Source: Lepidodermella squamata (Eukaryota; Animalia; Gastrotricha). From it: a stretch of DNA of 64,000 nt. Under the pieces are notes generated by a model. That model did not search any database and had not been told where the DNA came from. It saw only the letters and a list, made by a program, of their open reading frames with translations. The stretch covers positions 434,001 through 498,000 of the forward strand of contig JBLDXI010000002.1 in NCBI GenBank assembly GCA_047495785.1, given 5' to 3'. Below are positions 33,815 through 64,000 of this stretch, in pieces. Both the position numbers and the translations under genes were made by a program. Position 1 is the first letter of the stretch; every line of letters begins with the position of its first letter.

Positions 33815-35923
33815 ATGGTAATTAAAGCTTTCTTTCTCACAATTTTGCTATTCGCTGGGGCCTCAAAAGCCAGGGTAATTTTTGAAATTTGTTGGCTGAA
33901 TTTTACTTTTTTGAAATTTAAGTTTAAGAAATGTTTAAAATTGTTGATGTTTTTTCAAGGAGGATTTTAGTTCTCAAAATCGCCTTAATGACGATTGCGA
34001 TCTTGACCCTCTGAAGGGCTTCGAGTACCAGGTCATCAATGGCTCAATCGACGCCAATGCATCTCAAGTTGTAGCTGGGACGCAAATTTCAGTGAAATGC
34101 ACTTTGAGCAACGGAACAATAACCGCTGTCTGCAAATTTAACTTCAACCTTCCTTACGATGGAGTCTGCTTTCCTCAAAGTAAATTTTATGTTTTATTTT
34201 AAATTTTATTTCTATTGATTCAAAATTACTGACCTGCGTGTCATTGTGAAACCACTTTATTGAACCCAATTTTTTCGAAAAATATTAAAAAAATGATAAT
34301 ATTTTTATTTTTTCCAAGGGAACATAACGCGATTCCCACAAAAGCCGAAACATTGCAGTCTAACAGCTCCATCCGTTGAAAATGGCAAGGTGGGAGTACC
34401 ACCAGGAATGGCGGTTGACGAAACTAGAATCGGGACTAAGCTAATTATTAGGTGCCTCAAAGGCTATAAACTGGTTGGAAATTTGGATGCGCAAATCGAA
34501 TGCAGCCGTAATGCCGAATGGATTGTACGCGCCTACTGCAAAACCGAACAAGAGGTGAGTACATGAGTGTGATTTTTTCATATTTCCGACTTGAAATCAA
34601 TTGATACTTGTTGCTTCTTAAAATGTATTAAAATTGCTGCAAAATTCGAAAATAATTTTCCTAAAATAATTTCAAGTTCAAATTTTTTGATATTATTTGA
34701 CAAATTTATATGAATTCATTTTTTATAAAATAAAGTGAAAAAAATAAAAAAACCCGCGAAACTTTGATTGAGGTCAGGTTAATTATACCTAATTGAACGC
34801 TAAAATATCGTGCAAATCACTGATTTTTAAAATCGATAACTGAATCGATATCGGCCGAAGTATACAACTAGAAATTTGATCTCTTATAGAGAGCAAAATG
34901 CTCGTAATGGTGAGATCATTAAGCTAGGCATTATAATGAAATATTAAAGCTGTAGGAAAATTGTAACATTCGAAAAATCCATATTTTAGGAAAAGTTTGG
35001 GCTGGAACCCTAAATTTAGAATGGCAAAGTTCGCTTTACTTTCTCTTTACTTTAGCTAATTTTTGGAATTTTTTAATTTTATTTCTCTATTGCTTTGTTA
35101 AATCGTTTCAGCAGCGTAGCTTTTTTATCAAGATTCCTTTCCTTGCTAATAAGCTTGATTCAATCTTGAATCTTATACGAAATCTCTGAATTTTCAACAG
35201 ATGAGGGAGTTGTTCACTAATATGGGAAAGGCTGCAACGCATGGTGACGCACAGAAGCTAGCCGAATACCTTGGAATGAACATCCTCAACATCAACTACA
35301 TCATCACCGGCACCATGGAACGGACGCAGCAATGCCCGCGACGCTTGACAGGCGCAACCGTGCTACACCGAACGATATCCTGCGGCCAACCCGCCTCAAT
35401 CATCCGAATTCTCATCCGTCACGGAGCTAGCTTAACGTTACGAGACAACGATGGCTGGAACGCAATGATGTTTGCAGCCGCTTTCGGAGATCGGGCTGTT
35501 ATCGGCGAAATCCACAACGCTAGCCGCCAGAATGGGGTTGATCTAGTCGAGACTCGTGACGCGTTAGGCCTTACCCCGTTAATGCACGCGGCTAGGCACG
35601 GCAACCTCGAGACAGCGAGATTTCTACTTGAAAATTCAGCCGATTTCGATGCTAGAGATAGCGAAGGCATGTCGCCGTTGTTGCTAGCCGCCCACTGGGG
35701 CCATGCGAATGTGGTGAGGTACTTGATTTCCGTGGGGGCGGAGCTTGGCTTCATCACTGCTTCTGGCTACTCGGCTCTGGATTTAGCGGCGATGAATGGG
35801 TATCTTTCTGTGGTGAAGGCTCTGGTCGAAGGCGGTATTCTAGAGGTCGTCCCAAGCTTGCCGAATCCTTCGCTGTATCCGGAAATCGGGTATTACCTGC
35901 AACAAGTGATGGCTAGAGGTTAA
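33815..35923 (+). CDS. Signal peptide + 2 sushi/CCP-like domains + ankyrin repeats, 412 aa; exons 33815-33874, 33960-34179, 34319-34554, 35201-35923
   Basis: Signal peptide MVIKAFFLTILLFAGASKA. CCP domain C...P.VENG...GTKLIIRCLKGYKLVG....IEC..NAEW....C. Consensus phase-0 donor GAG|gtgagt at 34555 and phase-0 acceptor ttttcaacag|ATG at 35200. The ankyrin exon has GLTPLMHAARHGN and GMSPLLLAAHWGH. Confidence 0.75.
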
Positions 35924-36495
35924 CACTCAATCAAATGCGCTATTGCATGTCTGTTTTAATCGGAATAAAATAACAACTTTCTCCGTGTTTACTGGTGCAT
36001 TCAAGTTCAATGTATCAAGCCAAACTGATGGATCTCACTTAGACACTCAGAGATTTGCGGGTTTACTTCATATCGATTCCAAGTATCGATTTCAAACATC
36101 AGTCATTTCATCGATATGAGCAGTTCAGAATTTACCCTGCGCCGCTAGATTGTTAGCTATTGGACGGATACATATTAGGTTCATATCCAAATCACAAATC
36201 AATTCGAGTCAAGAAAGGTATTTCTTCCATGTTACATGTTATCCAAGTTTCAGTTCATTCATCAATTGACGCGGGTCCATCGCGACCTGTAATCAGCTTT
36301 TCCTGCAGATTCGGCCCTAGAATCCAGTTCAAAAGTCACGTGACATATTCACTGCGCACTTGCATGTAAAATGTTCAGGATTGTTCGGGAATTCATGACA
36401 CCTTTCAGATTAGATTAAGAGAGATAAACCGACCAGGAGGCATATAATTCAGAAGAAGGACAGGCAATATTATACTAAGCATATTTTTAATAGTC

Positions 36496-37034
36496 ATGGA
36501 TGAACATAGGTCGTGCCAGGTAAAACGTGACGCTTAGAATTTCCAGTTAGTTTTGCATATCTAAAATTTTAGATTTGCCTCGCCCCGACGGATGGTGCGA
36601 TTCGATGCGGAGCCATCGCATGCGAAGCCTGTAAGCGGTTCTTTCTCAGAATACGCCGCATATCCCCAAATTCGATAAGACATGATGGATGCAACCTTAA
36701 GGCATCAACTATCAGTCGAAATGGCTCGTTTTACCGAAACAGCTGCCGGAAATGTCGCTTCGATCGCTGCATGGCCGCCGGCATGCAGATGGACCTCCAA
36801 GAATCTCGGAAGCATTCAAATGCCAAGAGAAATTCCCCATCCGAAAGTCCGATGCACGTTCAGTCGACGGAATCGGCAAAATTTGAAGATTTCGCACTAA
36901 AACTCGTCAATTCAGCCCAAAATTTGAGGCACTGCTTTGCAGATCTGCCGATGCGGCGGCTCAACTCTTCCACAGTCTTAGATGGGTCGGATTTTCAACG
37001 AATGTGGATGGTTTGCATTGTTTATGAATCGTAA
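36496..37034 (+). pseudogene. Truncated nuclear receptor (DBD + hinge only, 161 aa open frame); exons 36496-36519, 36573-37034; partial duplicate of 49372-50559
   Basis: MDEHRSCQ|ICLAPTDGAIRCGAIACEACKRFF is identical to the 49372 gene. Homology starts in the upstream region (~36280) and stops abruptly at ~37018, followed by a stop codon and AATAAA. It could be an expressed DBD-only gene. Confidence 0.75.
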
Positions 37035-37320
37035 TTCTTATGCCTCCGTAAAAAATGAAACATGGATACCGTGTGGTGCTGGTTTAATGCAATTGTGTAA
37101 TATACCAATAAAGAATTTACAATAAGAATTTAAACTCAGCATATAAAAGGATAGAAAAAACCTAACCCTTTAACACATAATATAACCATGCACTCATCTC
37201 TCATCATTCTCTGTTAGCGCGCAACGTACATTTCGTGTAATGGAGCCATTTCATCCTGTCCCATGTAGGAGCAGCTGGTCATCTACGGGCGAATAATAAT
37301 AATTGACGTCATCAGTTGCT

Positions 37321-37321
<1 letters not shown>

Positions 37322-37351
<30 letters not shown>
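37322..37351. repeat. C30 homopolymer (G-tract on the minus strand)
   Basis: 30 consecutive C residues read directly; the exact length is assembly-sensitive. Confidence 0.85.
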
Positions 37352-37492
37352 AGCTGTTCAGCTTTCAGTACAGTTTTTGGCGCTGGCGCCATGAAGAAGC
37401 CGATATCTACAGCCGCGATAGCTTGAATTTCTTCATTGTTCTCGCGATAAACTTGATTATTTCTCACTGTTAATTCATCTATTCGAAGCTAA

Positions 37493-40400
37493 ATGCTAGT
37501 CAGAAGTGTAGTCTTGCTGTTTATACGTAATTTTTCGCACGTTTCCGCTCAAAGTCTTACCTTGTTTTTTAAGAGCTGGTAGTTTTCGACCTTCCCCATA
37601 ATGTGTATGGCAAGGAGCCTGTAAAACCGAACATCACTATCAGCGAGATCACGCCGGAAAATGGCGCAGCGATTGGACTCAACAATGCTATTTTTTTTGG
37701 CTTCCTTGGCGCTGTTTGGTTTCCTTCTATGAAGCCGGAGGTTGGGGCCTCGGGGAACCCTAAGCCCGCAATCAAGATCAATGCGCCAAAGAAGCCAACT
37801 CCAACTAAGCCGAAAGGGGAGAACGCTGTGAAGCCAAAAGTTGGAACCCCTGTGAAACCGACGAAAGCTGCTTCGACCACACAGAAGCCAGCGGGTTAGT
37901 AGTCGATTTCATTCTTTCATTGCTCGCTGTCAGATTATATGAAGATGTGTAGAAAAGAAATCAACAGAAATAGAACTAGCGATCTTCTCATACAGCGAAA
38001 AAATCTGTGAAAGTCGAAAGTCTCTCATCTCGAACACCTTTCACAAGAAAACATTATCCTTTTGATTAATTGATTTCGGCATATTCCATTGCCAACGCCA
38101 TTGTGAAAGCCGCTCATTTGTTCATGAGGGAAAATCCTTTAAATACGTGGCACAACTGTGCTCGAACTGTAGGCTTTATTACACACACAATTCTCTGTAC
38201 CTCGGCCTTCATAGTCTTCTGTCTTCTTTCTTACAGTTGGACCGATTTGCCAAACAGCTTGCGCGAACGGAGGAACTTGCGTTGCTGACAACAAATGCAA
38301 ATGCACAGCTGGCTGGACTGGCGATGCGTGCAAAACTTGTGAGTTTTATATCCCTTGATCGATTCCAGATTCAACGTTCTTCAACCTAAACGTTTTTTCA
38401 GCTGAGTGCTCAAAGCTTTGCGAAAACGGTGGAACCTGCGTTGGACCCGACACCTGCAAATGTAACGGATTGTTCGTTGGGCCAACTTGCTCCCAGGGTA
38501 ACCAAGACTAGCGATCTGGCGAATTCTACTCGAATGCTATAAATGTATTTTCAGGAAAAGCGTTAGTACCTGAGAAAAATACTGATCTCACTTTCGCCGA
38601 AGCTTCACAAGCTTGTAAGAAAGCCAATGCAAGGTTGCTCACTCCCAAAGATCAATCGCAAATCGAAGCCTTGCGGGCTTATTTACAAGAGAAGAAACTG
38701 ACTGCTAGTCCTGTCTGGATTGGCGCTGCTACGTCCGCATACGTATGGGGAAACAATGAGCCTGTTGATAATTCGTTGTGGCACACGAAGAAAGAGGCTG
38801 GCGATGGTGAATGTGAGTTAATAATGTTAGGAAACCAGGAATATTAATATATATATATATATCTACACGCTGAAGGTGTTGAACTCATCACGCGTTATGA
38901 TAACAATGCTAAGTCCTTCGATTCCGGCCTGGTCACTGTTGACTGTGCCAAGAATTATAAATTCATTGTATGCCAGGACACGAAATCGGTAAGCTCTTGG
39001 CCTGATCCGTCTACTGTCAACTCTAGGAATTTCATATGATCCAGTTCATCATGCAAGTATATACGCTCAATGGCAATCGCGCTGGTGCGATGAAATTCTG
39101 CGAGCAAGAAGGCATGCGGCTCCCCATCCTCAGCGATCCTGGTCAGTATGCAGCAGTTGATGGTATTCTCCACGAGTTTTCCTATGGGGAAAACGAGAAA
39201 TCTGTCCCTGTTTTGGCCAGTAGACGCCCTGACGCTAAATTGGACTCCGCAAGCAAAGGATATTCACCAGCTCGTAATTTGCATTCGATTTTGTTAAAAT
39301 CTTAGCTTTACTTGACGATTTCCTCTTTGAATTCTTGCATCAGACGTTCAATACAGTTTTGAAAAAAATACCGTGTCATCCAAGCCAGCAACGGAAAAGG
39401 GAACAGTGATTTGCGAGCGATTCACAGGTGATATAGTAATCGGTGAAATTTAACATAGCACTAATGTGTCATTTTTTCTAGCCACCTGCACACCAGCTTG
39501 TGAGAACGGTGGAACTTGCACTGATACAAATGTCTGCTCATGCCGCGGTGGATTTGCCGGACCAACTTGCAAATCTTGTAAGCCACTTATATAAGCTTTA
39601 GTCAGCCTGTGGAAATCAGTTTATTTTTCAAGCCAAGTTCTTCAAGGTTGCAACAATCGGGAACACGCCTTTCGGCACTTGTGAAGCTTCCGGCGGAGTT
39701 ATGGCCTCGATTCGCACGCCGGAGGAGGCCGAACAAGCTAAAGCAGTCGCCAAGGATGATATGGTTTACATCGGCTTGGGCGCCGTCTATGCTGGGAGCT
39801 CTAACATTATGATGGGTAATTATTATCCCACAAACCGTATTCCTATGCGACCGGGTCCATTCGGTTGGAAAGCCGGCGAACCATCATCCAACGGAAAGTG
39901 TAAGACTCGTGTTGAGCGATAGCCTTGCGATAAATTAAATTTTCCACTTAGGTGTTCAATTTGAGAAAGATAGCTTTTCTGTTGTTGAGTGCAACCAAGC
40001 ACATCTCTACCAATCCAATAGTGGCATATGCGCAGATCGAAATGTAATATTTCGCTTTGTTTCCTGTCCTGCTATTTATCTCTATTCTCAAACAGCTTGG
40101 AAATATCACGGTTGTACAATTCCTAGCCCAAAATGAGTGGCCCAAAAGATGTCAAGAATATTCCGGTGGACTTAATCCTGGCTCTCTCGAATCTCTGGCG
40201 GATTTCAAATTTGCAGTTCAGAACAATTTATGGCGCTTCCCACTTACTCTTGTTAATCGCTATCGCACTCATACTTACACCCATGTCACCGGCGAAAATA
40301 TGGATAACTTCCCAATACCCTGGGCTAAGGAAAGCCGAGTACACACCTACAACGGCTATCCATGTAAGCTATTTAATACGAAAACTTTGAAGTATGTTCA

Positions 40401-48593: not shown

Positions 48594-49371
48594 AAACCAT
48601 TAACCACATTTCCAAATTTAGGATAGGAATACATTTATCATTTGATTTGCCAGATTCTAACCAATTATTCCAATCAGTCACGCTTTCAGGGTACGTTATT
48701 CGATAATTTGAACATGGCTGACTTCCACTAGTCTTAATGGATCAAAAATGTTCTGCGCCGTAACATTTCGAGCAATTAGGACGGAAGGTAGATTCATATC
48801 TGAAATCCAAATCACAAAGCCTTATTTTCCTTCTTCCATGATATTTCTTGTTGATGGTCGATGAATTCGAAGGTTTTATTTGCTTGTTTCATGACTAAAT
48901 TCGCACTAGTATTTGCTGGTGTGAATAATATCTTCGGGTTGCTGTTCAGGATATTCGACAAAATCTGCAAATGATCGGTGACCGCTGAGCTGATTTGACT
49001 TTCACCTAACGGTAAAATACAACATTTGCTTAGCTGCTAGTTAAGCAAAACCAGGGGTCAAGAACTGAATGTGCACGACTCACAGTGATCAGGCAATATG
49101 ACAAATGTTACGTTACGCAACAAAAAATTATTCAAAGTTTCAAGCTCATTGGATCGTTTTATTTTGACCTGTAATAAGATTTTATCCTCAGACTCGGTCC
49201 TATAATTCAGTTCGAAAAAACGCGCGAGCTTTCCACACTACGCCCTTGCTTGTACAATTTTCAGGAATTCATGACACCTTTCAAATTAAATTAGGAGAGA
49301 TGATCCGCCCAGGCTGCATGTAATTCTGAAGACGGACAGGCAATATTTTGTAAAGCAAATTTTTAACGGTC

Positions 49372-50559
49372 ATGGATGAACATAGGTCGTGCCAGGTAAA
49401 GAGTGAAGCTTACAATTTTCCGCCTAATTTTGCATAGCAAATATTTTAGATTTGCCTCGCCCCGACGGATGGCGCAATTCGTTGCGGAGCCATCGCCTGC
49501 GAAGCTTGCAAGCGATTCTTTCTCCGACTACGCCGTATATCCCCGAATTCGATCAGACATGACGGATGCAACCTTAAGACATCAACTATCAGCCGAATTG
49601 GCTCTTATTACCGCAACAGCTGCCGGAAATGTCGCTACGATCGCTGCCTGGCTGTCGGCATGCACATGAACGCTCAAGAAGCTGGAAAACATTCGAATGC
49701 CGTAAAGTTCCCTTCCGAAAGCCCGATACACGTTCAGTCGACGGATGGGGCGAAATTCGAAGATTTTTCTCTGAGGCTCGTTAACTCAGCTCAAAATTTG
49801 AGGCACTGCATCGCCAATCTGCCGATGCGGCGGCCAAACTCTTCCACAGTCTTAGATGGGTCGGATTTTCAAAGAATGTGGATGGTTTGCATGGAACAGC
49901 AAAGACAAAAGACGCTTCATGTTCGCAATTTTGTCCGAGACATGCCCGGCTATTCGGATCTGACCGTGAAAGATCGATGTCTGATGTTTGCCAGTGTCAT
50001 CCCCAAGTTGACTCTGTTATGTACCTGCTGTGAGGGGATCGAAAGATCAACAGGATTTGCTGTCAATCCTCAAAACGCCCAAGTTTTCTTCAGAAACGTC
50101 CCTGAGCTAGCGGTATGGAAAAGCCCAATAGAAATGATAAATTTTAAACCTTAAATTTGAAGTATGTTTCAATTGAAGCGAAGCACATTGGTCGTATCAT
50201 CGACGCCTGGCGACCATCTGAAGCCGAAATCGCAATTTTAATGGCGGTACTGTTTTTCAGCCGTTAGTTTTGAATTGAACCTTTTTGGGTACTAACTCAA
50301 TTATGTGTTGACAGGATTTCCTTTCGATTCGACCGATAAGAGGCGTATGATAATAGAGCAGTTCATTTGCTTGGCCGTGAATGGGAGGGAAGAACGTCGA
50401 AATTGGCTTCTATGGTTGATCAAAGAATTCTCAGGCATCGAGGAGCGGAGGTATATTGCGATGGATGCTTTCTTCCAGCGATGCCCGCAGTTTTTGGCCT
50501 CAAGTAGCATTATTGTTGAATCCATGGAAACAACCTTGAGCACTAGTTCAACGCGATAG
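49372..50559 (+). CDS. Lineage-specific nuclear receptor, 343 aa; exons 49372-49395, 49450-50112, 50163-50262, 50315-50559
   Basis: DBD CEACKRFF ... RNSCRKCRYDRCLAVGM; LBD signature FVRDMPGYSDLTVKDRCLMF; AF-2-like IIVESM. Confidence 0.9.
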
Positions 50560-51068
50560 AGTTAGGAATAATGTTATTACTAGTTAATATCTGAAAATTA
50601 TTCAATAAATATTCCGATTCATATTTTTCCCGAATGTTTCCCGATTCAATGGCGTTGTAAAATAATGTTTTGAGCGATTTTGCGATATCGCAGCGCAGAG
50701 CTACGGCTCCTTTACAATTTTTCGCTCCAATTCCCAAGGCATCAACATCCGAATACAGAAAAACTGTCTCCAGACAGTTAATTATGGACAAAAGGAATTT
50801 TCATCGAACTAACAGGTTTTAGCTGAACAAATCTCGACTGATCGTAATTGAGACTGTCATTTCCTGATCGAATGAGCTAGGTTCGGTCATTCCTTGCTCT
50901 TTTAACTTTTTCAGGGCCTCACTGCTTCTATTTTTAATCAAATTTCCCTCAGAAATCACCAACTTGTCAAAAGCACTATCTATCACTAAACTTGAATCAT
51001 ACGAAAAAATTTGATAGGCAACACATTTTTTGAAAATTTCAGCAATAAAGATTTACTGTGGGGAAATA

Positions 51069-52212
51069 ATGTTGTGCACGGTAATAAAACTTTAGAGCTA
51101 TCATTTCAAATTCTATTGCCCTTTCCTTTTAATAAAGGTATGCTACACTAAAACAGACGGGAAGAAGCGATGCGGCGCCTTTGTATGCGAGGCCTGCAAA
51201 CGTTTCTTCCTGCGCCATCGATCGAGCCCTGCTGAGGTCGCGCACATGGGCTGTAATTATGGAAACTCAACCATAAGCAAGTCGGGCAAGCTTTACCGAA
51301 ACACGTGCCGCAGATGCCGATTCGAGCGTTGCATCGGCGTTGGGATGAATTTCCACGGCGATCATACGCCGTTGAATGTCGCGAACGTCGAAATTGGCAA
51401 AATCGAGCTCGATTCATTAGCATTGGCTAAAAACGCCGTGGTATTGAGAACCAGTGTATCCCAGTTACCGATGCGAAGGCGGCATGAACCGGTGATTTTC
51501 GATGAATCCGGTCTTCTCAGCATGTGGTCTGACGTTATGGATCACCTGGATAGGATTGTGGTACTACAACGCGATTTCGTTCGCAACTTGCCTGGATATA
51601 GAGACCTCAGCGTGGCGGATAGATGCAAGCTGTTTGCCTATGTTTTCCCCAAGTTGACTTTGATCAACACTTGCTGCGATGGGGTCGATCAGTCGGCGTG
51701 GTTCGCATCGCCTGAAAATGCGAAAATTTTCGTTCAAAAGATGTCAGAGCTATCGGTAATTTTTAGCCTTAATAATTAACTTTGATTTTTCTTGTCCCAC
51801 TTTAGTACGCTAATGTCGAGGCGAAGTATTTTGGCCGAATTTTCGAGACTTGGAAGCCGTCAGATCTCGAAATAGCTGTTTTGATGGCTGTACTATTTTA
51901 CAGTGGTATGTTTCTAGAAAGAAATCCATCTTAACTGTTTTATTGATTGAAATTCAAGGTTTACCAGCAAACCAGTTGGAAAAGCCCGAGGCCATTGAGT
52001 TGGCGATGAAGCAAATTGAACGGCTCTTTTTCGCTGCGACCAGAGGAGATGAAGGCCGCAGACAATGGCTGGCCTATGTTGTTCGCGAATTCACTGGGGT
52101 TGAGCTACGCCGGTACACTGCCCTGAATGAGTTGCTTCAAAGATATCCTGAAATCGTTCCGTATAGCCGCATCATCGTTGAATCAATAGACACTACTTTG
52201 AATGGAATGTGA
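51069..52212 (+). CDS. Lineage-specific nuclear receptor, ~327 aa; exons 51069-51080, 51138-51755, 51806-51905, 51959-52212
   Basis: CT|VC...CEACKRFF, RNTCRRCRFERCIGVGM, FVRNLPGYRDLSVADRCKLF and IIVESI. The start codon is uncertain. Confidence 0.88.
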
Positions 52213-53012
52213 TTCGAAATTGATAGCTGATCATTATTACGGCATTTTAGTAAATGAGCGCTGTATGATTTTAATAGGCTTCTTCGGAAAAGTAAAGGTC
52301 TGACCTGTGTGAAATTGATTTGTCCATTTTCAAGCCTTGCAAAATAGGTTATTGTTAAGTGGGTTAATCTTTTGTAGTTTCCGATCTTCCATCTTCCATG
52401 TGCTCAAAGAAGCCCATATCTCTGAATATCTAAGTATTTCTCAGAATTCGTGGTTATTTGAACTGGAATATCAGACCGGATTTATGATATAGAGGATACT
52501 TCTCTAAAATATGACCAAAATCTGCCATTTATTGGCAAAACTAGCTCTATCTATAGCCGCCTTAAACTTGATGGTTTCCTTAAGGATTATATAAAGATAG
52601 GGCTAATGTATATATAATGATGGGGGACTCAATTGATTGTTCAGATGTTCATCCCGAGGTTCAACAACATTTCAATTATGGACAATTTTCGAGAATAGGT
52701 GATGACGTCTGGTTTACAACAAACATGACCGATTTTCCTCGTGAATCGGAGAAATTCTGTCGACGGCGCTATCACGTCAAGATAATCTAATTTAAGATCT
52801 TCACCCTTGAAACCAAGTGCACTGCAAACTTATCATCCTACTATTAGTTCAGTTATAGCTACGTGTCATGTTGTCACCGCAGAAATGTCCAACTTAACGA
52901 GAACAGATTCGAATGACTAGACTAGGCTGGCAGGTAAATCGATACACAGGCTAAGGGCCGTGTTCTAATTTTTACATTGCTAAACATTTGCATCTTATTA
53001 GTAAAAGCAGCG

Positions 53013-54313
53013 ATGGACAAAGCAGCAATCGATTCAGAAAACAAGCCCCAATGCCCGGTTTGTCATTTTCCTCCAAGAATATCACGTTTGAACATCCTGT
53101 TTGTCCCAGGTATGCCAGGCCGCTACCGACGGCAAGAAAAGGTGTGGTGCCTTAGTATGTGAGGCATGCAAACGATTCTTTCTTAGAATGCGAGCTTTCC
53201 CTGATGGTATCCGCCACACCTATTGCAACGAATCACGGGCTAACGTTAGCAAAACAGGTGCTCATTTTCGCAACACCTGCAAAAAATGTCGTTTCGACAT
53301 GTGCGTCGAAGTCGGAATGCACCAACAAGACCGAAAAGAACGAAAATTAGCGAAAATGAAGGCGGCTAAGCTGGCTGAAGCTCCTCCTGTTAGCCAAATT
53401 CCATTGGCAGAGCCAGCGAAGCTTGAGTCGATTCAGAATATATTAGTAACCCGAGCTATCCATCTGAGGCACCAAATCAACATACAACCATACAGAAGGC
53501 GAGATTCTCCTATGAATCTCGACATTAATATCGATACTGCTCTAATGTGGAATATGAGTATGGAACATACTGCCGTGGTCGCTGTTTTCCAGAGAGAATT
53601 TCTCAGCAGTTTGCCTGGGTTCAGAGACCTAACCGTGTCGGATCGGTGCAAGTTGTTCTCGAACTCCTACTCTAAAATATCGCTGGTGAACACGTGCTGT
53701 GAGGGCGAGGAACTTGCAGCTGGATTCAGTGGTTCTAAAAAAAACTGTGAGATCTATACCATAAAGTTACCGGAACTTTCGGTGAGTCATAATAAATTCA
53801 GGGGAAAAAGTTTATTTTTCTGTATTTTATAGTACGCTCTTTTGGAAGCGAATCACCTCGGCCGGGTATTCGATGCTTGGAGGCCGTCTGATATTGAACT
53901 CGCAGTTTTAATGGCTTTGCTGTTTTTAACTGGTATAATTTACGAATTTTAACCTATTTGAAGCTTCTTATCCATTTTCAATCTTTGAAGGTCTACCTGC
54001 AGATGCTATGGAAAAGCCATCCGCTAGAGATGCGGCTGTGAAGCATATCAAAAATCTTCATTGCTGCGCGACTGGTGGTAAGGAAGACCGGAAAGCTTGG
54101 CTTTATTACACGATGGAACAGTTCGCTGAGGTCGGAACCCGGCGATCTGTCGCCTTTCAAAAAGTACTACAGCGCTGCCCGGAATTCTTACCATCGAGTC
54201 GAATCCTTGTAGAGATGGCCGATACTGTTCTGAGGGGATCCTTACCCACAGACGTTGATAAAAACGCCGCTGCTGATGATGAAGATTCTATATTTTCCTG
54301 GGACTCACTATAA
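53013..54313 (+). CDS. Lineage-specific nuclear receptor, 379 aa; exons 53013-53057, 53110-53781, 53833-53932, 53991-54313
   Basis: CP|VC...CEACKRFF, RNTCKKCRFDMC, FLSSLPGFRDLTVSDRCKLF and ILVEMA. The 100-nt third exon is conserved across paralogs. Confidence 0.92.
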
Positions 54314-54679
54314 CATCCATGGGGGAATGAGCTTTTAGTTTTGGTTTAAGCCTCCTACTTCCCATTTTCGAAATTAATTTGTCGAAAATCACCCAGAAGA
54401 ATTTGTGGATTTAATTGCTGATAGTAGGTACTGATGTAACATAGTTGCTCTCACTCCTCAGTCCTTAGAAGATAGGGACATTTCCTCGGGGACTATTATG
54501 TCGTTTTTCTTGCGAACGACAGATGGCTAAAACTATGTATGAAGATTTACTGGGAAAGTCTGACTTGCACTTTTCCTACATTAGCTTTTACTGTTGGACA
54601 CGATGTCTGAAATTCATTGCTTAGGAATGTTGTTTTTAGAAATAAATATTTCAATTCTTTCCGCATTTTTCCACATTTT

Positions 54680-57049
54680 TCAAAGGTTGGCAGTAGATGC
54701 AGTTCTTGGCTTTTTCTGCCCCAGGAATCCAGGGTAGATCCAAAACGCTGAGATGATTGCTGAAACGATGATGATAACAAACGCAAGAGCTTCCTGCAGT
54801 TTAATCGCGTCAGACTGCACAGTTATGGCGATTAAAATTGAAGCTGGCAATAGCGTACCCCCAGCGATAACCGCGAGACAGCATGGTACAAACTCATGAC
54901 AACTGGCAGGTATACCCTTTATCTGTCTCAGGCGGAATGCATATAGCGAGGCAATTGCTATCAGTAGGAATTCAATAACTGCAACAACTCCGAGTAAAGG
55001 CCATCCAATCATCGCACACTGGACTAGCCAAACTTCAATCATAGCGTCCAAGGTTTCATCGTACATCGGCTCAGACGCTAGCTTATAGGCGCAGATCATT
55101 CCATTGCTAACTGCCCAGCCTATTAAGATGCCAAGATTGACTAAAGTGATCGAAATCGCTCCTATACTCGTCTGCTTATCAAACGTTCTCCAAATCCGAC
55201 TCGGGAAAGACAGAACCCACTTTTGATACATGTTATAGCCTGTTGATGAGCTATTCTTGTGCAATTCGCCTGAATTTGCAAAAGGGCTCGCACTTTGAAT
55301 CCCCAGCGAATGTTCAAGGATTGCTTTTTGAACAAAGAAGTTGATGCAGATTAACCGAGTGGCTATCAAGCTCCAGACAATAGAGAGTCCGATGCCGAGC
55401 AGGAAAAAGCAAGCTGTAGCTAGGCCTGCGCTCTCCAACCCCCTATCAATAGTAAAAGCCCCTGATGACGAATTAAGGATCAAACAGCCGAATAGGCCGA
55501 AAATTTTGGAAAATCTGAAGTAAACCTTTCTCGGCTTATTCAAAGCGATTGCAATTATAGAACTTGCTTGAATGATCGTAATAACGATAATCAGAAACCA
55601 GCATACACCGAGGGAGGTCGTCGAAACGTGTTTTACATTTCTGAGAACAAGGTGTCGATCTCGGGGAGGAGCTCCAAGAGGCCATGTTATAGGACGGAGA
55701 ATTTGCAAGTCGTAACTATTGAGCGAAAACTCGGAAAGGGACCTGTCCAGCTTTTGACGGATTTGAAGCAAGTCTTTGATCCCATCAGGTGTCCATTGAG
55801 TTGCAGTTTGTATGTCTCCCATGGGTGAGCCAGAGGAGCTGTAGGCCGACCTTCCAATCCTCATTCCGATGAACTCGGATGATAGAACAGATTCATTCGC
55901 AATTTTAGCGACTAGTGAAGGGTTGGAGTGATAGTCGCGAAGGGTCAAGTTATACTCAGACTTCAGACGCAGCTCAGTGTTGTGAAGGGCGAAGAAGGCT
56001 GTTAAAAACGCGTCGTAAACCACGTAAGCAGTGATGAGAGCTGAATCTGCAGTAGCAGGGGTTGCGTTTATTCCCTTGATTATGTAAGCGTCATAATCAG
56101 CCGCATTGTCTCCGAACGAGGTCAATCGACTGTAGTTATCAGGCCTGCCAATGTAGCCGAAGAAATACGTCTGCCTTATCTGGGCTAACAACTCCTGTTG
56201 CGAGCAATTCACGGCCATAGTGTTGTCGACGCCGAGCGCAGTTAACAAAGTGGCGAAAACGTAACGAGGCCCTCGCATTCCTTGTTTGTATGCGAAGCAC
56301 AGGAAGCGGACCACATGGTAGTTACTTGATATAGCCAACACAATCACCCTAGCTCCTGAATTTCTAACAACAGCCACGTCTTCAGGGGTTACGCTCGCAA
56401 TGGTCACATTACCGAAAAACCCGTGAAATACCGCAATTTCAAAGCCATTTGCAACAGCCTGGTCATGAAGCAACATCGCAGTTCCATAGTCATTCACGTT
56501 GCCCATGAATGTTGAGAGCGCAATTCTGTTCCACTTCCCGATATCCCTAATAAACTTCAAAATAGTGATCGCCGTGGTTTTGACGGTAGGTAGCCGCAGG
56601 TAGAAATTAGGGTATAAATAGTGATCCGCGAGGAACGGGGCCGCGCATACCGTACTTATACCGACTTGGTCGATGTACCCGACAAAGCGACCCAGAGCTC
56701 GACATCCAGCGGATATAGCCGGGCCAATAAGGATGGGAGATTGGTAACCGTTCCGCCCTGTTCCGTCGAATTGCCGGCCGAAGAGAACGGCCTCCTTTGG
56801 AGCGTTAAAGCCGAGAAATTCTTCGCGTGGGACGATTTCGATATGATAGTCCGGCAGAATGTCGCTTTGATTGTTAACGCGATCAACGGCGAGTTGAACT
56901 GTTAGAAAAGACGCGGCTAATCGCTTTGCCTCGATTTCCACTACCGGATTGAGGTATAGGACTTTCAAGCGATACGGCTTGGTTTGAGAGTGAACAGCTA
57001 AAGCCATTAATAATATGGCGAGCGAGACGAATTTCAGCCTGGCCAGCAT
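54680..57049 (-). CDS. Intronless class C GPCR, GABA-B-receptor-like, 789 aa
   Basis: Signal peptide; Venus-flytrap motifs (LAVDRVN...DILPDY, LIGP..S..C, YPNF, W.RIA, ARVIV, CFAYKQGMRGPRYVF); W....PP.D linker with no cysteine-rich domain; seven TM helices. Confidence 0.9.
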   Translation of the reverse strand: MLARLKFVSLAILLMALAVHSQTKPYRLKVLYLNPVVEIEAKRLAASFLTVQLAVDRVNNQSDILPDYHIEIVPREEFLGFNAPKEAVLFGRQFDGTGRNGYQSPILIGPAISAGCRALGRFVGYIDQVGISTVCAAPFLADHYLYPNFYLRLPTVKTTAITILKFIRDIGKWNRIALSTFMGNVNDYGTAMLLHDQAVANGFEIAVFHGFFGNVTIASVTPEDVAVVRNSGARVIVLAISSNYHVVRFLCFAYKQGMRGPRYVFATLLTALGVDNTMAVNCSQQELLAQIRQTYFFGYIGRPDNYSRLTSFGDNAADYDAYIIKGINATPATADSALITAYVVYDAFLTAFFALHNTELRLKSEYNLTLRDYHSNPSLVAKIANESVLSSEFIGMRIGRSAYSSSGSPMGDIQTATQWTPDGIKDLLQIRQKLDRSLSEFSLNSYDLQILRPITWPLGAPPRDRHLVLRNVKHVSTTSLGVCWFLIIVITIIQASSIIAIALNKPRKVYFRFSKIFGLFGCLILNSSSGAFTIDRGLESAGLATACFFLLGIGLSIVWSLIATRLICINFFVQKAILEHSLGIQSASPFANSGELHKNSSSTGYNMYQKWVLSFPSRIWRTFDKQTSIGAISITLVNLGILIGWAVSNGMICAYKLASEPMYDETLDAMIEVWLVQCAMIGWPLLGVVAVIEFLLIAIASLYAFRLRQIKGIPASCHEFVPCCLAVIAGGTLLPASILIAITVQSDAIKLQEALAFVIIIVSAIISAFWIYPGFLGQKKPRTASTANL

Positions 57050-58650
57050 TCACTTTTGTTTATTCTTCCTTCTCAGAAAAATATAGATCTGGTTAAACCT
57101 GATTGGCAAACTGTTATCTTCAGGGCGGGCTGAGCCACTTTAATTTGTCAAAAATTTTGAAGCAGGACTTCCGACTTTTCGGTAATATGAACTGTCCGGA
57201 ATAGCATTAGAAGCCAAGGAAGTCAGCTCCGATATAGGCCATTTATCACCACCCACTCTATGCAATCTTAAAAAAGAAGGCGTGCAGGTAATATTGTAAC
57301 TCGAAACATTTTGACGAGAAGTTTCTAGTGTTCCAGGCACGACTATAGTAAAATGTAATTTAATATGCTGCGTTGGTGCATTGAAGGATTTGTAGGCTCA
57401 GGTTTGAGATTCCGATGAACTGTTTGGGATGATGGACTGGTGGTCTAAAAAGACGGAATTTGGGGTCTGAGTCCAGAGTTCAGTAAAGGTCATAATTTTT
57501 ATAAATCTGGCTGACTAGAGGCACCTCTAACAATTCTGAATTCGCACGTGATATTCCATAATCCAAGCGCAGCCTCAAACCGATATAAAATAATCCGGAC
57601 ATTTACTACGTCGCACTATTCCAAGGATTTCTTCGCAGACCAATTCTTCACCTCATTCCACTCCAAAAATTGTCAGTAATATACGAGATACCTGGCTTAT
57701 GTTTTTTTGCTCCTCGGAAAAATTAATGCATATCTGGTCAAATGTCATTGACGATGCCATGGTCATGGTGTCAAATTAATACCTTGAGCCCACGGCTTCA
57801 TATTACACGTAAACATCTATGAAGCTTGCCAACATGCGATTTCCGACAGGTGGGAAATGTGAACTTATACGCAATTATGCGCATCCATCACACAATCTTA
57901 GGGAGATAATTAAGTTTTGCTGAATCCTAAAGTGAATTTTCAAGTGCGAGCGCGACATATAAACAGCTGAATACGCCAGGCCGACGGTGGACGTTTAGTT
58001 AAATTTTGTTCATTTTCCAAATTTGGCTCGCTAGATAAAGTGCGGACTCTGCTGAATTGCCTTTCAATGAAGTCGCTTTAAAAATCCGGTCTGAAAGCTC
58101 GTCATTTACGGTTTTTATTTTTGCCCTATATATCAACATGAGCAATGAGAAATCGATGGCGTGAAGAGTTTAGAAGCTTGACCCAAGTGCTTGTTACACC
58201 TAGACGGTAACAGAGTTTGACTGCTGCACGTTTGAGAGGGCCATTGAAGCATCAATTATTTCTGGATTTAATCGAATCTAGCCACAGAGATCTGAAAAAT
58301 CTGAAAGATCATGTGAATTGTCGGCATTAAGCCCCACGTGAAGCTGCGGAGTTTTATACATTTGGACAACCATCATCCTTTCCTCATAGTTTATAAAAGG
58401 CTTGAAAGACTTTTCTCGTGTGGAGAATTTCTATGGCGTTATCACTAAAATAATTTAATTAAAGATCTTCACCTTTGTGGTGCACTACATTTAAAACACA
58501 TTATTCCTGTGAAAGTTCAGTTACCTGGGCGTTATGACAAATCTACTGGGAACATTGTGACTAAGCTGGCGGATCGATACTTAAAGCTAGCCAGAAAATT
58601 TGAAGTACAATAATGCCATTTCAATTCTCTCATTCCTAATTTCATCAGCC

Positions 58651-59965
58651 ATGGATAAAGCCGTAGTCGATTTAGGAAGCAGGTTTCTATGCCCGGTTTG
58701 TGGTTTTTTACCCAAATTTGTGGAAGCTGATTTTGGAAACCCTGTTTTTCCCAGGTATGCCAAACCGCTACCGATGGCAAGAAGAGGTGTGGCGCCTTGG
58801 TATGTGAGGCATGCAAAAGATTCTTTCTGAGACAACGAGCCTCCCCCGATGGAGTTCGCCACGCCCACTGCAATGAATCACGGGCCTATGTCAACAAATC
58901 GGGCGCACATTTACGTAACACCTGCAAAAAATGTCGATTAGATATGTGCATCGAGGAAGGTATGCATCAGCAAGACCGGAAGGAACGAAAATTAGCGAAG
59001 CTTAAGGCGGCTAAGCCAGCGGATGCTCCGATCAGCCAAATTCCACTGGAAGAGCCAGCGAAGCTTGAGTCGATTCAGAATCTTTTAGTTTCCAGTGCTA
59101 TCCATCTAAGGCATCAAATCAACAGCCATCCGTATCGACGAAGGGATTCGCCACTAATTATCGACAGCGATATCGACGTTGCTATACTGTGGACAATGAG
59201 CATGGAACATACCTTCGTTGTCGCTGTTTTCCAGCGCAAATTTCTCAGCAGTTTGCCAGGGTTCAGAGACCTAACCGTGTCGGATCGATGCAAGTTATTC
59301 TCGAACTCCTACTCTAAAATCTCGCTGGTGAACACGTGCTGCGAGAGCGAAGAGCTGGCAGCTGGATTTACTGCTTCCAAGATCAATGCTGAGCTCTATA
59401 CCAAGAAGATACCTGAAATTTCTGTGAGTCTTTGCTACTTTTCAATTTTGTTATGTATTTTGTTGTACTTGAAAGTACGGTCTTTCTGAAGCTAATCATC
59501 TCGGCCGAGTATTTGCTGCTTGGAAGCCGTCTGATATTGAACTCGCAGTGCTGATGGCCCTTTTGTTTCTAACGGGTAATTACATATGCCGAACTTGATG
59601 ATGCAATTTCAATCCATTCCTTCTTAGGTCTACCTGCAGAAGCTCTGGAAAATCCACCCGCCAGAGATAAGGCTTTCAAGTATATCAAAAATCTTCATTG
59701 CTGCGCGACTGGAGGCAGCGAGGAGCGAAATGCTTGGCTTTACTACACCATACAACAGTTCGCCGAGGTTGGCACCCGGCGATCCGTTGCGTTTCAAAAG
59801 GTACTACAGCGCTGTCCGGAATTCATTCCGTCGAGTCGAATCCTCGTTGAAATGGCTGATACTGTTCTGAGGGGATCCCTACCTACAGACGCTGATAAAA
59901 ACGCCGCTGCTGATGATGAAGATTCTATATTTACCTGGGACTCGCTGGGATGTGAGCTGGCATAA
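58651..59965 (+). CDS. Lineage-specific nuclear receptor, 383 aa (close paralog of the 53013 gene); exons 58651-58695, 58755-59423, 59476-59575, 59628-59965
   Basis: Colinear and highly similar to 53013-54313, with the same intron positions. Confidence 0.92.
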
Positions 59966-61241
59966 ATCGCCATATATATTCTGTTGTTTATTAAGCATGT
60001 TGTTGTTTATCATCGCTGGTTTTTTCAGTTATTTGATATTTTCACTGATCAGTTATTCAAGAAATTGTTTCAGGATTTCTACCGTCGTGTTGTTCTATTT
60101 GACGAATCGCGCGATAGACAAACTGCGTTATACTGCGCGGCTCTCTGGTCTCAATAAGAACTGAATACAGGGTTTAAAGATTTGGTGAGCGGACAAACAT
60201 CAGCGACTTTTCGAATTCTGAGATGTTTGAGAGCCTTGTGATGGCCGCGGTAACATCGAAAAGTCACCACAAAATCTGTTCACCCGCTGAACAAATCTTA
60301 TAATACGGTACATCTTCAGCTTTATTCAGTTTTTATTGACACAAGAGAGACACGCAGTATGTCTAATGTTGGTATGTGAAAGTGATTGCCAAGATTAGAG
60401 GAAATGGTGAAATCATTCTTCAGCAAAGTGATAATTTAAAATTTAAACAACTTGATCGCAAAGTTGTGAAGGCATATGAGGAAGTGGACGCCATAATTAG
60501 ACGTCATAATTGCTGATTTCGAAAAAAGCCTGTTTCAAAAATGTACTTTATGCCTTTATCAATAATTTCTCACGCTTTTATTTCTGATGTTATTTTCATA
60601 TTCTTGAGATAATTCTGAGCTGAGAAATCTTGCTGGGTGTTCAAGAATGTTCATGGGTAGGAAATAGCTGGGTAGGAACATATAGGAATCCAAGATTCGT
60701 CCCTCTTCAAATCAAGACATGCATTCGTTGAATTTTTATCGGTTAGCCTCAATTCGCACCCTGCCCCCAATTCAGATAATGAACTGTTTCATTTTTTTCA
60801 TTGGGGAAGTAGATTCGATTTGCATAAGATGTAACGTGCATTCATGATCCATTAAAATCCCATCTCACTTCAGACTTTTCCATCACGGTTACGAAATCGC
60901 ATCTCTCACCCTTGAAGTCTAGTCATTTTCAATCAATATTAATCATTAAGATTATATCTCGCTTAACAAGATTTTCTCATTCTCAGCATTTTATCCTGCA
61001 GGATGCATCAGAAAACTTCGCGTCGCGTAACGACCTATTACGCATGAGTTACGAGGTAAGGTTGATTCAAATGTCGAAAGCGGGAACTTGAGCTCTAAAT
61101 ATTGATAAACTGCGACAACCATCAAGCATCCGGACAGGTGATCTAGAAAGACACTTGATTACGACTTCCCCGATACATTACTTACTTTGTCGAGCTTCAA
61201 ACTCACAGAATTCTAACCGGAACTCAGTAACCTACGGCAGA

Positions 61242-62206
61242 ATGAGTCAGTCAATTTGTCCGGTATGTTAAAAATCCTTTCCATATCTAACGCTTGCGTT
61301 ATTTTCTCGCGATTTTTAAAGGTATGCGCAACTTTCACCGATGGTAGAACACGATGTGGCGCTTTGGTTTGTGAGGCCTGCAAAAGATTTTTCCTAAGAT
61401 TAAGAGCTTCCCCGGAAAGCATCGAACACATCGAATGCCGAAAATCGCGGGGAAGTCTCGGCAAAAATAGTGCAATGTTTCGCAATTCCTGCCGAAAATG
61501 CCGGTTCGAACGCTGCATCAAAGTTGGAATGTACTTGCAACTTACTTACTTTATCGGACCGCTGCAAGTTGTTCTCCAATGCGTACTCAAAACTTGCTTC
61601 CGTCAACACGTGCTGTGAGGGAGTTAGTTACGCTGCGGGTTTCAGTGCATCCCGAGAGAATTCGCAGATTTTTATAGCCAAAATTCCAGAAGCTGCGGTA
61701 AGGAGAAGTCTGTTAAGCTATGAGCATTATGATCACAAGTATTATTTCTTTCCAGTACGCATTGCTTGAGGCAGATCATCTTGGTCGCATTTTCGAAGCC
61801 TGGAATCCGTCGGATTTCGAAATAGCAATTTTGATTGCTACGCTCTTCTATACAAGTTAGTTTCAGCCTGTCCTGCTCTTTTCTATCTGTCTAAAAATGT
61901 TCTCCAGGTCTGCCTGGTTATGCAATGGAGAATCCCAGTGCTCGAGATCGCGCGTTACAAGAAGTCGAAAGTCTTCATTTCTGCGCGACTGGCGGCAGCG
62001 AGGATCGAAAAGCTTGGATGCATTACGTGATGGGTGAACTTTCTGAAGTTGGCATTAGGCGGACTTATGCTTTTCGACAAGCGCTACAGCGATGCCCAGA
62101 ATTCATACCAGCGAGTCGGGTAATGATTGAAATGCACAGCTCAGTTTTGGAAGAACCGTCACAACCTGAACTTTACCTTCCAATAACAGACGAGGATTCA
62201 CTGTAG
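61242..62206 (+). pseudogene. Nuclear receptor with internal deletion and frameshift (DBD frame ends at 61618); exons 61242-61262, 61322-61697, 61756-61855, 61908-62206
   Basis: After KVGM the sequence jumps out of frame to LTLSDRCKLF. About 290 nt present in the 53013 paralog are missing at ~61540. Confidence 0.8.
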
Positions 62207-63738
62207 ACCCATTTTGACATCGGACTTGAATATAACCGGTCCATTTTCCCATTTTTTTCGTCGTTGTCTTCATGTGCCAATTAAACTCTCTGTCTTGTCA
62301 TATATCTCCTGATTTTTCCATCCGACAGAATACATTAGTGTCAATAACAATTTGAATGTTACGAAATAAAATTGTCCTTGACTATTTTGAAGTGTCCAGG
62401 TAATCGACAATGAGGCATGGTTATGCATCTCGAAATTGTTAGAATTGCAAAATAGTTTAAAATGAGGTTTCAGAACTAAAATTGGGGCGTTCGTTGGTAA
62501 TTCCGGCAATTTTCTATTCTTGATCGATGCAAATTTTGAAGCTGTACAACACGAATTTCGCCGTGAATCACAATCATATGAAAACATTGAGAGCTTGCAA
62601 TTCGCCCCGCCTCAGATTTCAGACCGGAAACGATGCCGAATTTGCAATCAAAATTATTCAGGCTTGCGCGGTTCAATAAGCACGGAAAATCTGATGATTT
62701 ACGAATTTTTAATGTTGATTTACTAGCTTTAAAATGCAATTCTATGTTGATCGGCGAAGCTCGGGCTCTCAATAATTCTAAATTCGGAATCTGCGAATAG
62801 TACTGCCAAGCTGATCACAATGCGGGCTCTAAAAGTGTATGAAGCCGCGATTTTTTGTCCAGTTCCTTACTGTTTGTCTACGATTTCGGATTATCTAGGG
62901 CCAGAATCTAATAATTTGTTCATGGCCCAAACTAAAAGTGTTCGTTACGCTAATACGATAATAGCTGTTGACTTCTATTTCAAACACAAATTTGAGATGG
63001 CCAATTAGGCTCCAGTAGTTAGCAAAATTGAATTAAGCTAAGGTGATCAGGCGGAAATTACAATGGGCGGATCCAGAGTGGGCGATGAGTGAATAAAAAT
63101 GAAGGTCGCGTGCCCACTTTTTCACGTTTTGGTGTGAATTTATGTACTATAGGAAGATCGCTAGTTTCCGATCTGTATAGAGTTGTCTATGCGGCGGAAC
63201 CGATTACAAATTTTCCCAGCTTTGATCGAACTGAAAACCTGGTTTTTGAGATGGAATTTGAGCCAATTTAGCGCGGTGCCCGATCCCAAAAGATTTTGGA
63301 CCGATACTAAGGATGGATTGATTGGATTGATTATTGCTTCACCTCTCATTTTTCGGATTACCCAATTATCGATCGCTCAAGGTTTTATCATTCTTAGCAT
63401 AATAAACATAGGACCGCGGAACTGGTTAGGATCGCAAGAATGAGCTCACCGTATGTACCGATGGAACTGGTTGGGATGATCCCTAAACGAGGATACATAC
63501 ATATGGAAAGTTGAGCACTATGGCGTAGTGAATTCCAATGCATTAGGTGCGTAAAAGGTTAATTCAGATGTCAAGATCGGCTCCAAATAATAAACTGCGA
63601 CATGACTCGCAAGTCAAGCGCTGATGAACTGGAAAGACACTCGGCGAGGATTTCCAGGATAATTAAATGAGTTTTATCGAGCTTCAGATTAAACTTATAA
63701 GCGGCATTCTCAAACCTACGCTCCGATTTGTTGGCGAG

Positions 63739-64000
63739 ATGAATCAGTCAATTTGCCCGGTTTGTTATCAGCCTTCGTTTCTAAATGCTGGTTCCAAGTT
63801 CCAACAATCTATATATTTTGCAGGTTTGCGCAGCCTTCACCGATGGCAAGAAACGCTGTGGCGCTTTGGTTTGTGAAGCTTGCAAAAGATTCTTTTTGCG
63901 GCTAAGAACTTCCCCGGACTGCCTCGACCACATCGAGTGTCAAAAAACGCGAGCCAGACTCAGCAAAAATGGCTCATTGTTTCGCAACTCCTGCAGAAAA
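63739..64000 (+). CDS. Lineage-specific nuclear receptor, 5' part, runs off the window; exons 63739-63759, 63824->64000
   Basis: MNQSICP|VCAAFTDGKKRCGALVCEACKRFFLRLRTSPDCLDHIECQK...RNSCRK. Confidence 0.9.

Follow-up and report, generated by a model that had tools for sequence, protein, structure and literature searches.

The stretch of Lepidodermella squamata DNA analyzed here is 64,000 nt long (contig JBLDXI010000002.1, positions 434,001-498,000, forward strand); it is referred to below as the window, and all coordinates are given within it. [quoted passage not shown] Exactly seven copies, all on the + strand, were found by a six-frame motif scan together with a profile scan of all open reading frames (ORFs) in the window, and the profile scan of every ORF detected no further receptor-like sequence within the 64 kb. 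Each gene encodes a single DBD, and no second zf-C4 domain occurs within or between the genes (profile scan, gene models). The GC content of the window is 35-45%, consistent with the 43% given in the paper on the L. squamata genome, in which receptors are not treated. The first exon of each copy is tiny, extending from the initial Met to C-x (4-15 codons), and is followed by a GT..AG intron of 52-64 nt that in all copies interrupts the first knuckle between C-x and (V/I)-C. Because this intron splits the first zinc knuckle, finger 1 becomes visible only after splicing. The four-exon gene models were derived from homology between the copies and include two additional introns of 50-58 nt.

Few protein modules of animals are conserved as rigidly as the nuclear-receptor DBD, whose eight Cys and five-residue D-box are textbook invariants. 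The DBDs of the array do not match the canonical eight-Cys pattern (C-x2-C-x13-C-x2-C, then C-x5-C-x9-C-x2-C), having instead seven Cys and one His at the ligand positions, with spacings of x2, x14, x2 / (H)x2, x17, x2. In all seven copies, finger 1 reads C-x2-C-x14-C-x2-C and contains TDGxxRCGA, and FFLR comes after the P-box, CEACKR. Finger 2 reads H-x2-C-x17-C-x2-C, with a Cys-to-Cys spacing of 17 in every copy and with variable H-x2-C tetrads (HDGC, HDGC, HMGC, HTYC, HAHC, HIEC, and HIEC). The A/B domain comprises 2-13 residues ahead of the first Cys. Invariant in 7/7 copies are TDG, R-C-G-A, CEACKRFFLR, P31, H36, C39, R54, N55, and C57; among the Cys, His, Asp, and Glu residues between the P-box helix and Cys7, nothing besides His36 and C39 is invariant. 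The motif and profile scans thereby bear out what a preliminary description of this DNA had given for all seven copies (the layout of both fingers, the P-box, and the tetrads), as well as its statements that finger 2 lacks the canonical C-x5-C (7/7 copies) and that the A/B domain is nearly absent. The search pattern that it proposed, FF-x(12)-H, proved too narrow: the distance from FF to His is 12 residues in c1 and c2 only, and 11 residues in the other five copies.

Only c2-c5 are intact four-exon genes, with products of 327-383 amino acids and three short GT..AG introns each. Copy c2 spans 49372-50559 and encodes 343 amino acids (exons 49372-49395, 49450-50112, 50163-50262, and 50315-50559; codon of the finger 2 His at 49558-49560). 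Copy c3 spans 51069-52212 and encodes 327 amino acids (exons 51069-51080, 51138-51755, 51806-51905, and 51959-52212; His codon 51243-51245), c4 spans 53013-54313 and encodes 379 amino acids (exons 53013-53057, 53110-53781, 53833-53932, and 53991-54313; His codon 53215-53217), and c5 spans 58651-59965 and encodes 383 amino acids (exons 58651-58695, 58755-59423, 59476-59575, and 59628-59965; His codon 58860-58862). Copy c1 (36496-37034) is a partial duplicate, with exons at 36496-36519 and 36573-37034, the latter containing a stop, and with its His codon at 36681-36683. The product, of 161 amino acids, consists of the DBD and hinge only, the stop falling after the hinge. The region 36380-37034 duplicates 49257-49892 at c2 (640 bp, 85% identity by blastn) from a position 12.7 kb upstream, and the duplicate takes in the promoter-proximal region of c2, all of its exon 1, and two thirds of its exon 2. 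With a ratio of nonsynonymous to synonymous substitution rates (dN/dS) of 0.18 in its coding part, c1 may have been kept as a receptor made up of the DBD without an LBD, possibly a competitor at DNA sites.

The last two copies are also not complete genes within the window. Copy c6 (61242-62206; exon 1 61242-61262, exon 2 from 61322; His codon 61427-61429) has an intact DBD, after which about 100 codons, from the hinge to helix 3 of the ligand-binding domain (LBD), are gone following G-M at ~61531, and the remaining LBD is out of frame. The deletion, at 61531-61570, appears as a single event that removed the hinge through helix 3 and also shifted the frame. Between c6 and c4, blastn gives only short matches. 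Two downstream LBD exons of c6 remain ORFs, which would fit a deletion of recent date or else a variant that is allelic or due to the assembly. Copy c6 encodes either a DBD-only product or is a pseudogene. Copy c7 (63739-64000; exon 1 63739-63759, exon 2 from 63824; His codon 63929-63931) runs off the end of the window after C-R-K of finger 2.

The array genes are under purifying selection, with dN/dS values of 0.155 for c4/c5, 0.178 for c1/c2, and 0.141 for c6/c7. While c4 and c5 are 81% identical, the subgroups are only 41-48% identical to each other (aligned exon 2 or whole protein), and synonymous sites are saturated between them; despite this saturated divergence, His36 and all of the Cys are invariant. 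Two public sequencing runs contain this DNA, here called X1 (2015) and X2. Run X2 covers the whole region and is the probable source of the assembly. Run X1 covers only the exons of c2, c3, and c4, with zero depth between the genes and the highest coverage on the exons of c3, and one X1 contig bridges a GT..AG intron of c3, connecting 51754/5 with 51805/6 in agreement with the gene model. The X1 contigs cannot indicate expression levels; c2-c4 are probably transcribed and spliced. Reading the seven copies as a receptor array, as was done in the preliminary description, is upheld in that these are real, constrained, and probably expressed genes, with the correction that three of the seven are not intact or complete. 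Second contigs of X2, at about half depth, carry clustered differences at 50388-50439, 51120-51179, 52203-52299, and 53244-53376 and a 3-nt deletion at 51130, and look like a divergent second haplotype or paralogous array copies.

Sequence and structure comparisons identify the array genes as very divergent nuclear receptors. Copy c4 scores 30.6 bits against Pfam zf-C4 (PF00105; cutoff 21.1) and 13.1 bits against Hormone_recep (PF00104), which is under the cutoff of 23.5. Over a span that runs from the DBD to the end of LBD helices 3-5, exon 2 of c4 aligns to RAR-gamma, RAR-beta, NR4A2, and GR (phmmer against PDB sequences, E 1e-7 to 1e-5), and the match to the ERR DBD is weaker (E ~7e-4) and not among the best sequence matches in that search. 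An AlphaFold2 (AF2) model of the DBD, built from a 58-row alignment, has a predicted local distance difference test score (pLDDT) of 80, and the 50 PDB structures that rank highest for it in Foldseek are without exception receptor DBDs (template-modeling (TM) scores of 0.5-0.6). The AF2 model of the whole of exon 2 (pLDDT 83) matches multi-domain structures of PPAR-gamma, GR, RAR-beta, Nurr1, and LXR over ~200 columns in Foldseek. An LBD signature and an activation function 2 (AF-2) had been described as retained; the alignment of helices 3-5 to RAR, NR4A2, and GR agrees with the former, while the AF-2, a hydrophobic-x-E-hydrophobic motif, was recognized by eye only.

Relatives of the array were found among metagenomic proteins. 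A word-based homology search with exon 2 of c4 gave zero matches, and one with the family alignment gave only four metagenomic proteins, whereas an exhaustive profile search of 1.84 billion representatives returned 939 matches, none below 1e-30. The best 150 of these 939 matches fall into two kinds, namely long two-DBD proteins with the P-boxes CEACKK + CEGCKG, which are the top-scoring matches of a named type, and 37 short proteins with a single DBD. The short relatives have 2-40 residues before the first Cys, an x14 finger 1 with (T/S)-D-G-x-x-R-(N/C)-G, and P-boxes (e.g., CEACKR, CQACKS, CKACKS) that conform to x-A-C-K-(R/S), with FF-(L/I/M)-R next in the sequence. Their finger 2 is C-x6-C-x17-31-C-x2-C in nearly all cases (C-x6-C in 28/36), so that they keep both Cys5 and Cys6 where 7/7 array copies have H-x2-C; the long loop between Cys6 and Cys7 ends in G-x-x-(W/F/Y)-R-x-x-C, and the LBD is very divergent. 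All of the relatives that were looked up come from ENA metagenome assemblies (ERZ27333047, ERZ23486787, ERZ27332993; e.g., P0003, P0006, P0017, P0031, P0033). The closest (L002 5266-5964, L005 10001-10462, and L001 44-502) are intron-poor genes on animal contigs from at least three environmental metagenome assemblies, with alpha-2-macroglobulin, AP-2, trypsin/sushi, and Na/Ca-exchanger genes as neighbors. Other family members (P0138, P0133, and P0103) have different finger 1 spacings and second-finger layouts, and both fingers seem unusually plastic in this family.

Common to the metagenomic family and the array are thus an x14 finger 1, a short A/B domain, a long Cys6-Cys7 loop, and membership in one clade (see below); the family differs from the array in having C-x6-C in place of H-x2-C and in lacking an intron in the first knuckle. 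Because the relatives share them, the x14 spacing and the extra Cys of finger 1, the P-box, and the shortness of the A/B domain are, as judged from these sequences, traits of the family and not inventions of the array; by the same comparison, only the finger 2 change appears particular to this array. As to the proposal of an expanded, possibly undescribed subfamily, the array's layout was not found in the literature, but the x14 spacing, the extra Cys, CEACKR, and the short A/B domain belong to a wider family. Neither receptors of gastrotrichs nor a finger 1 with x14 spacing were found described in the literature, and no description of the H-x2-C-x17-C-x2-C finger 2 layout was found.

A maximum-likelihood (ML) tree was built from 99 DBDs and 76 columns, after exclusion of long or odd rows and cluster duplicates and with 22 two-DBD proteins randomly sampled. 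The six complete DBDs of the array form one clade (support 99/90), the array and the x14 family together form one clade (100/98), and the x14 family groups with the first DBDs of two-DBD receptors (93/58). Grouping the family with the second DBDs instead was not rejected in an approximately unbiased (AU) test (p 0.49). A phylogeny had been suggested as a check in the preliminary description, and it recovers both the array clade and the family, while placement relative to first or second DBDs is left undistinguished by the AU test. Within the family, a quick tree of 194 DBD rows disagrees with the careful ML tree on the sister group of the array clade, and a profile restricted to the LBD could not separate two-DBD receptors from other receptors. 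A link between the x14 family and the first DBD of two-DBD receptors seems likely from the x-A-C-K P-box, the following FF-(L/I/M)-R, and the Cys at the position of the Tyr in HYG.

Several known receptors resemble the array in part. The two-DBD receptors (2DBD-NR, proposed as NR7) carry the P-box pair CEACKK + CEGCKG (PMC10497141). Their first DBD, like that of the array, has CEACK(K/R) followed by FF-(L/I/M)-R and in 21/52 cases the Cys at the HYG-Tyr position, but these proteins have two tandem DBDs where the array has one, and most of their first DBDs have an x13 finger 1 and C-x5-C-x9-C-x2-C. The P-box of ERR (NR3B) likewise starts with C-E-A-C-K. However, ERR differs in its complete P-box, CEACKA, in the x13 spacing of its finger 1, in its canonical finger 2, and in an LBD that is well conserved; in the array, both fingers are non-canonical. 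The earlier remark that CEACK P-boxes are known from ERR and from two-DBD receptors is accurate in this sense (CEACKA in the former, CEACKK in the first DBD of the latter). The flatworm receptor HR96b has a Cys3His second finger ("CHC2") of unknown function, in which His replaces the second D-box Cys (PMC8363021), and according to the same authors the CHC2 motif is absent from two-DBD receptors. HR96b (Vitellogenic factor 1) therefore parallels the array in having a conserved, lineage-specific His in place of one finger 2 Cys, presumably forming a Cys3His site (PMC8363021), but it belongs to NR1J, has another P-box, and carries its His at Cys6 with a loop of full length, whereas the array has its His at Cys5 and a two-residue loop. 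A swap to a His/Cys3 site, as claimed from the first look at this DNA, accordingly agrees with a His in the Cys5 column but is not without precedent, a Cys3His finger 2 having already been published for HR96b at the other position. More generally, flatworms and nematodes commonly have "divergent" receptors that are lineage-specific and carry odd P-boxes.

The position of the His was determined by alignment. In a MAFFT alignment of the seven copies with 50 family relatives, the His shares a column with Cys5 and the next Cys shares one with Cys6, with a gap of four residues in the D-box loop of the array copies, and the same placement was obtained after canonical RAR-like and two-DBD sequences were added. 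The FF-to-His distance of the array (11 or 12 residues) is comparable with the distance from FF to Cys5 in the relatives, for which 11 is the mode (18/37). The residue at -2 of the His is aliphatic (Ile, Val, or Leu) in 7/7 copies; at -2 of Cys5 it is Leu in 26/36 relatives and Tyr, Phe, or Leu in canonical receptors, while at -2 of the Cys of the array's H-x2-C it is Asp, Met, Thr, Ala, or Ile. With Cys5 thus matched by the His and Cys6 by the Cys after it, the most economical reading is a Cys-to-His swap combined with a shortening of the D-box from 6 to 2 residues, with a predicted Cys3His zinc site.

The explanation that we favor, and consider probable, is that the window holds a tandem array of lineage-specific single-DBD receptors in which finger 2 is most likely Cys3His, with His at Cys5 and a contracted D-box. 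The array forms its own clade inside an undescribed family of short receptors whose signature resembles the first DBD of two-DBD receptors (NR7). In its history, the Cys5-Cys6 loop would have gone from six residues down to two and His would have taken the place of Cys as ligand five, with a likely succession from the canonical C-x5-C-x9 through C-x6-C-x17-31 in the family to H-x2-C-x17 in the array clade. The second module most likely retains one zinc in a Cys3His treble-clef site to which the His would contribute; such a site is structurally plausible because the x2 spacing of the new knuckle is also found in finger 1 and in most treble-clef fingers. The Glu-bearing P-box would recognize an AGGTCA-type half-site, and with the canonical D-box dimer contact lost, the proteins may bind DNA as monomers or dimerize through other surfaces. 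The new dimer surface put forward in the preliminary description is speculative. A more ambitious version, in which module 2 has His as its first ligand, the D-box loop has become a two-residue knuckle so that module 2 is built like module 1, and the array belongs to a large undescribed family, possibly with a single DBD that descends from the first one of two-DBD receptors, is tentative and, taken as a whole, somewhat doubtful.

A number of points weigh against the favored explanation. A change from TGY to CAY requires two base changes, ruling out a simple one-step swap, and in the AF2 models the long finger 2 loop has a lowered pLDDT of 66-67. The C-terminal LBD exons match nothing in a PDB profile search, in an hhalign comparison with one relative, or in a feature search of the ESM Atlas. 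The label of X1 as RNA is a tool's guess. The relatives characterized are the best 150 of the 939 profile matches, and further H-x2-C members could exist. Furthermore, the alignment taken by itself would be compatible with another homology, in which the Cys of the array's H-x2-C is the old Cys5, Cys6 was lost with the loop, and the His three residues upstream was recruited from the linker; the site would still be Cys3His. The distance from FF to this Cys (14-15 residues) lies within the FF-to-Cys5 range of a few relatives (13-14), but in both MAFFT alignments it is the His that occupies the column of Cys5, and the modal distance of 11 together with an aliphatic neighbor at -2 suits the His rather than the Cys, which makes such a relocated ligand quite unlikely. 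The second site could also have degenerated to three Cys with water or a carboxylate, or to a zinc-free state, the His being kept for another reason such as a DNA-backbone contact or core packing beside helix 3. The GR and ER DBD structures show a DNA-backbone contact by the residue two positions ahead of Cys5, which would put the stretch around the His near DNA; ligation by the His is a prediction from sequence, and model confidence is lower in the finger 2 loop. Set against this, the three remaining Cys are invariant across saturated synonymous divergence, treble-clef modules seldom fold with three ligands, and the His is the only invariant potential ligand and stands at a ligand column, and we regard degeneration as unlikely.

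The invariance of the extra Cys of finger 1 (R-C-G-A) in 7/7 copies raises the idea that it substitutes for the lost finger 2 Cys and cross-links the two modules. This Cys occupies the Tyr position of G-x-H-Y-G, which in solved DBDs lies on the finger 1 hairpin, remote from the second zinc site. Cys is found at this position not only in the array but also in 14/37 relatives, all with a four-Cys finger 2, and in 21/52 first DBDs of two-DBD receptors, compared with 0/52 second DBDs and 0/47 canonical single DBDs. Because it is present in relatives with a four-Cys finger 2, and hence older than the loss of the Cys, it is no compensation; its occurrence there and in first DBDs with a canonical C-x5/6-C led to the rejection of this very improbable alternative. 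Scarcely any credence can be given to the view that the array consists of decaying pseudogenes whose odd finger is a broken domain. The truncation of c1 and the deletion and frameshift in c6 would fit such decay, but four frames are intact across three introns each, the His and seven Cys are invariant, and the pseudogene reading was rejected on the dN/dS values of 0.14-0.18 and the exon-only, spliced coverage in X1.

Other features of the window lie around and between the receptor copies. A 240-aa ORF of ankyrin repeats (Ank_2, E 3.8e-34) is located at 35201-35923 on the + strand. Just past the truncated c1, at 37303-37473, is a run of about ten consecutive Pro codons (Gly on the other strand). 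Between c1 and c2, at 38635-39922 (+), exons resembling C-type-lectin-like and EGF-like domains (C-x-C-x-G-F-x-G-x-x-C) probably belong to an unrelated gene for a secreted or membrane protein. A single-exon gene of 789 aa occupies 54680-57049 on the - strand between c4 and c5 and matches the Pfam ANF_receptor ligand-binding region (E 1.9e-14); the C-terminal half of its product is hydrophobic, resembling a class C G-protein-coupled receptor (GPCR) or a receptor-type protein.

As a variation on a familiar protein family, the array is real but moderate. It provides a natural, probably expressed, and constrained case in which the D-box is almost deleted and the chemistry of one ligand is changed, with relatives that keep the intermediate C-x6-C, and thereby a ready system for asking how much of module 2 is required for folding, zinc binding, and dimerization on DNA. 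If the His knuckle and the reduced D-box are as proposed, the pairing of these receptors on DNA and the site spacings that they read would be altered, and interest in the array would increase if zinc ligation by the His and a changed mode of DNA binding were demonstrated. The array also adds to the evidence that gastrotrich-like animals expanded and remodeled their receptors on a scale known mainly from nematodes, and the link to the first DBD could help explain the origin or the descendants of two-DBD receptors.

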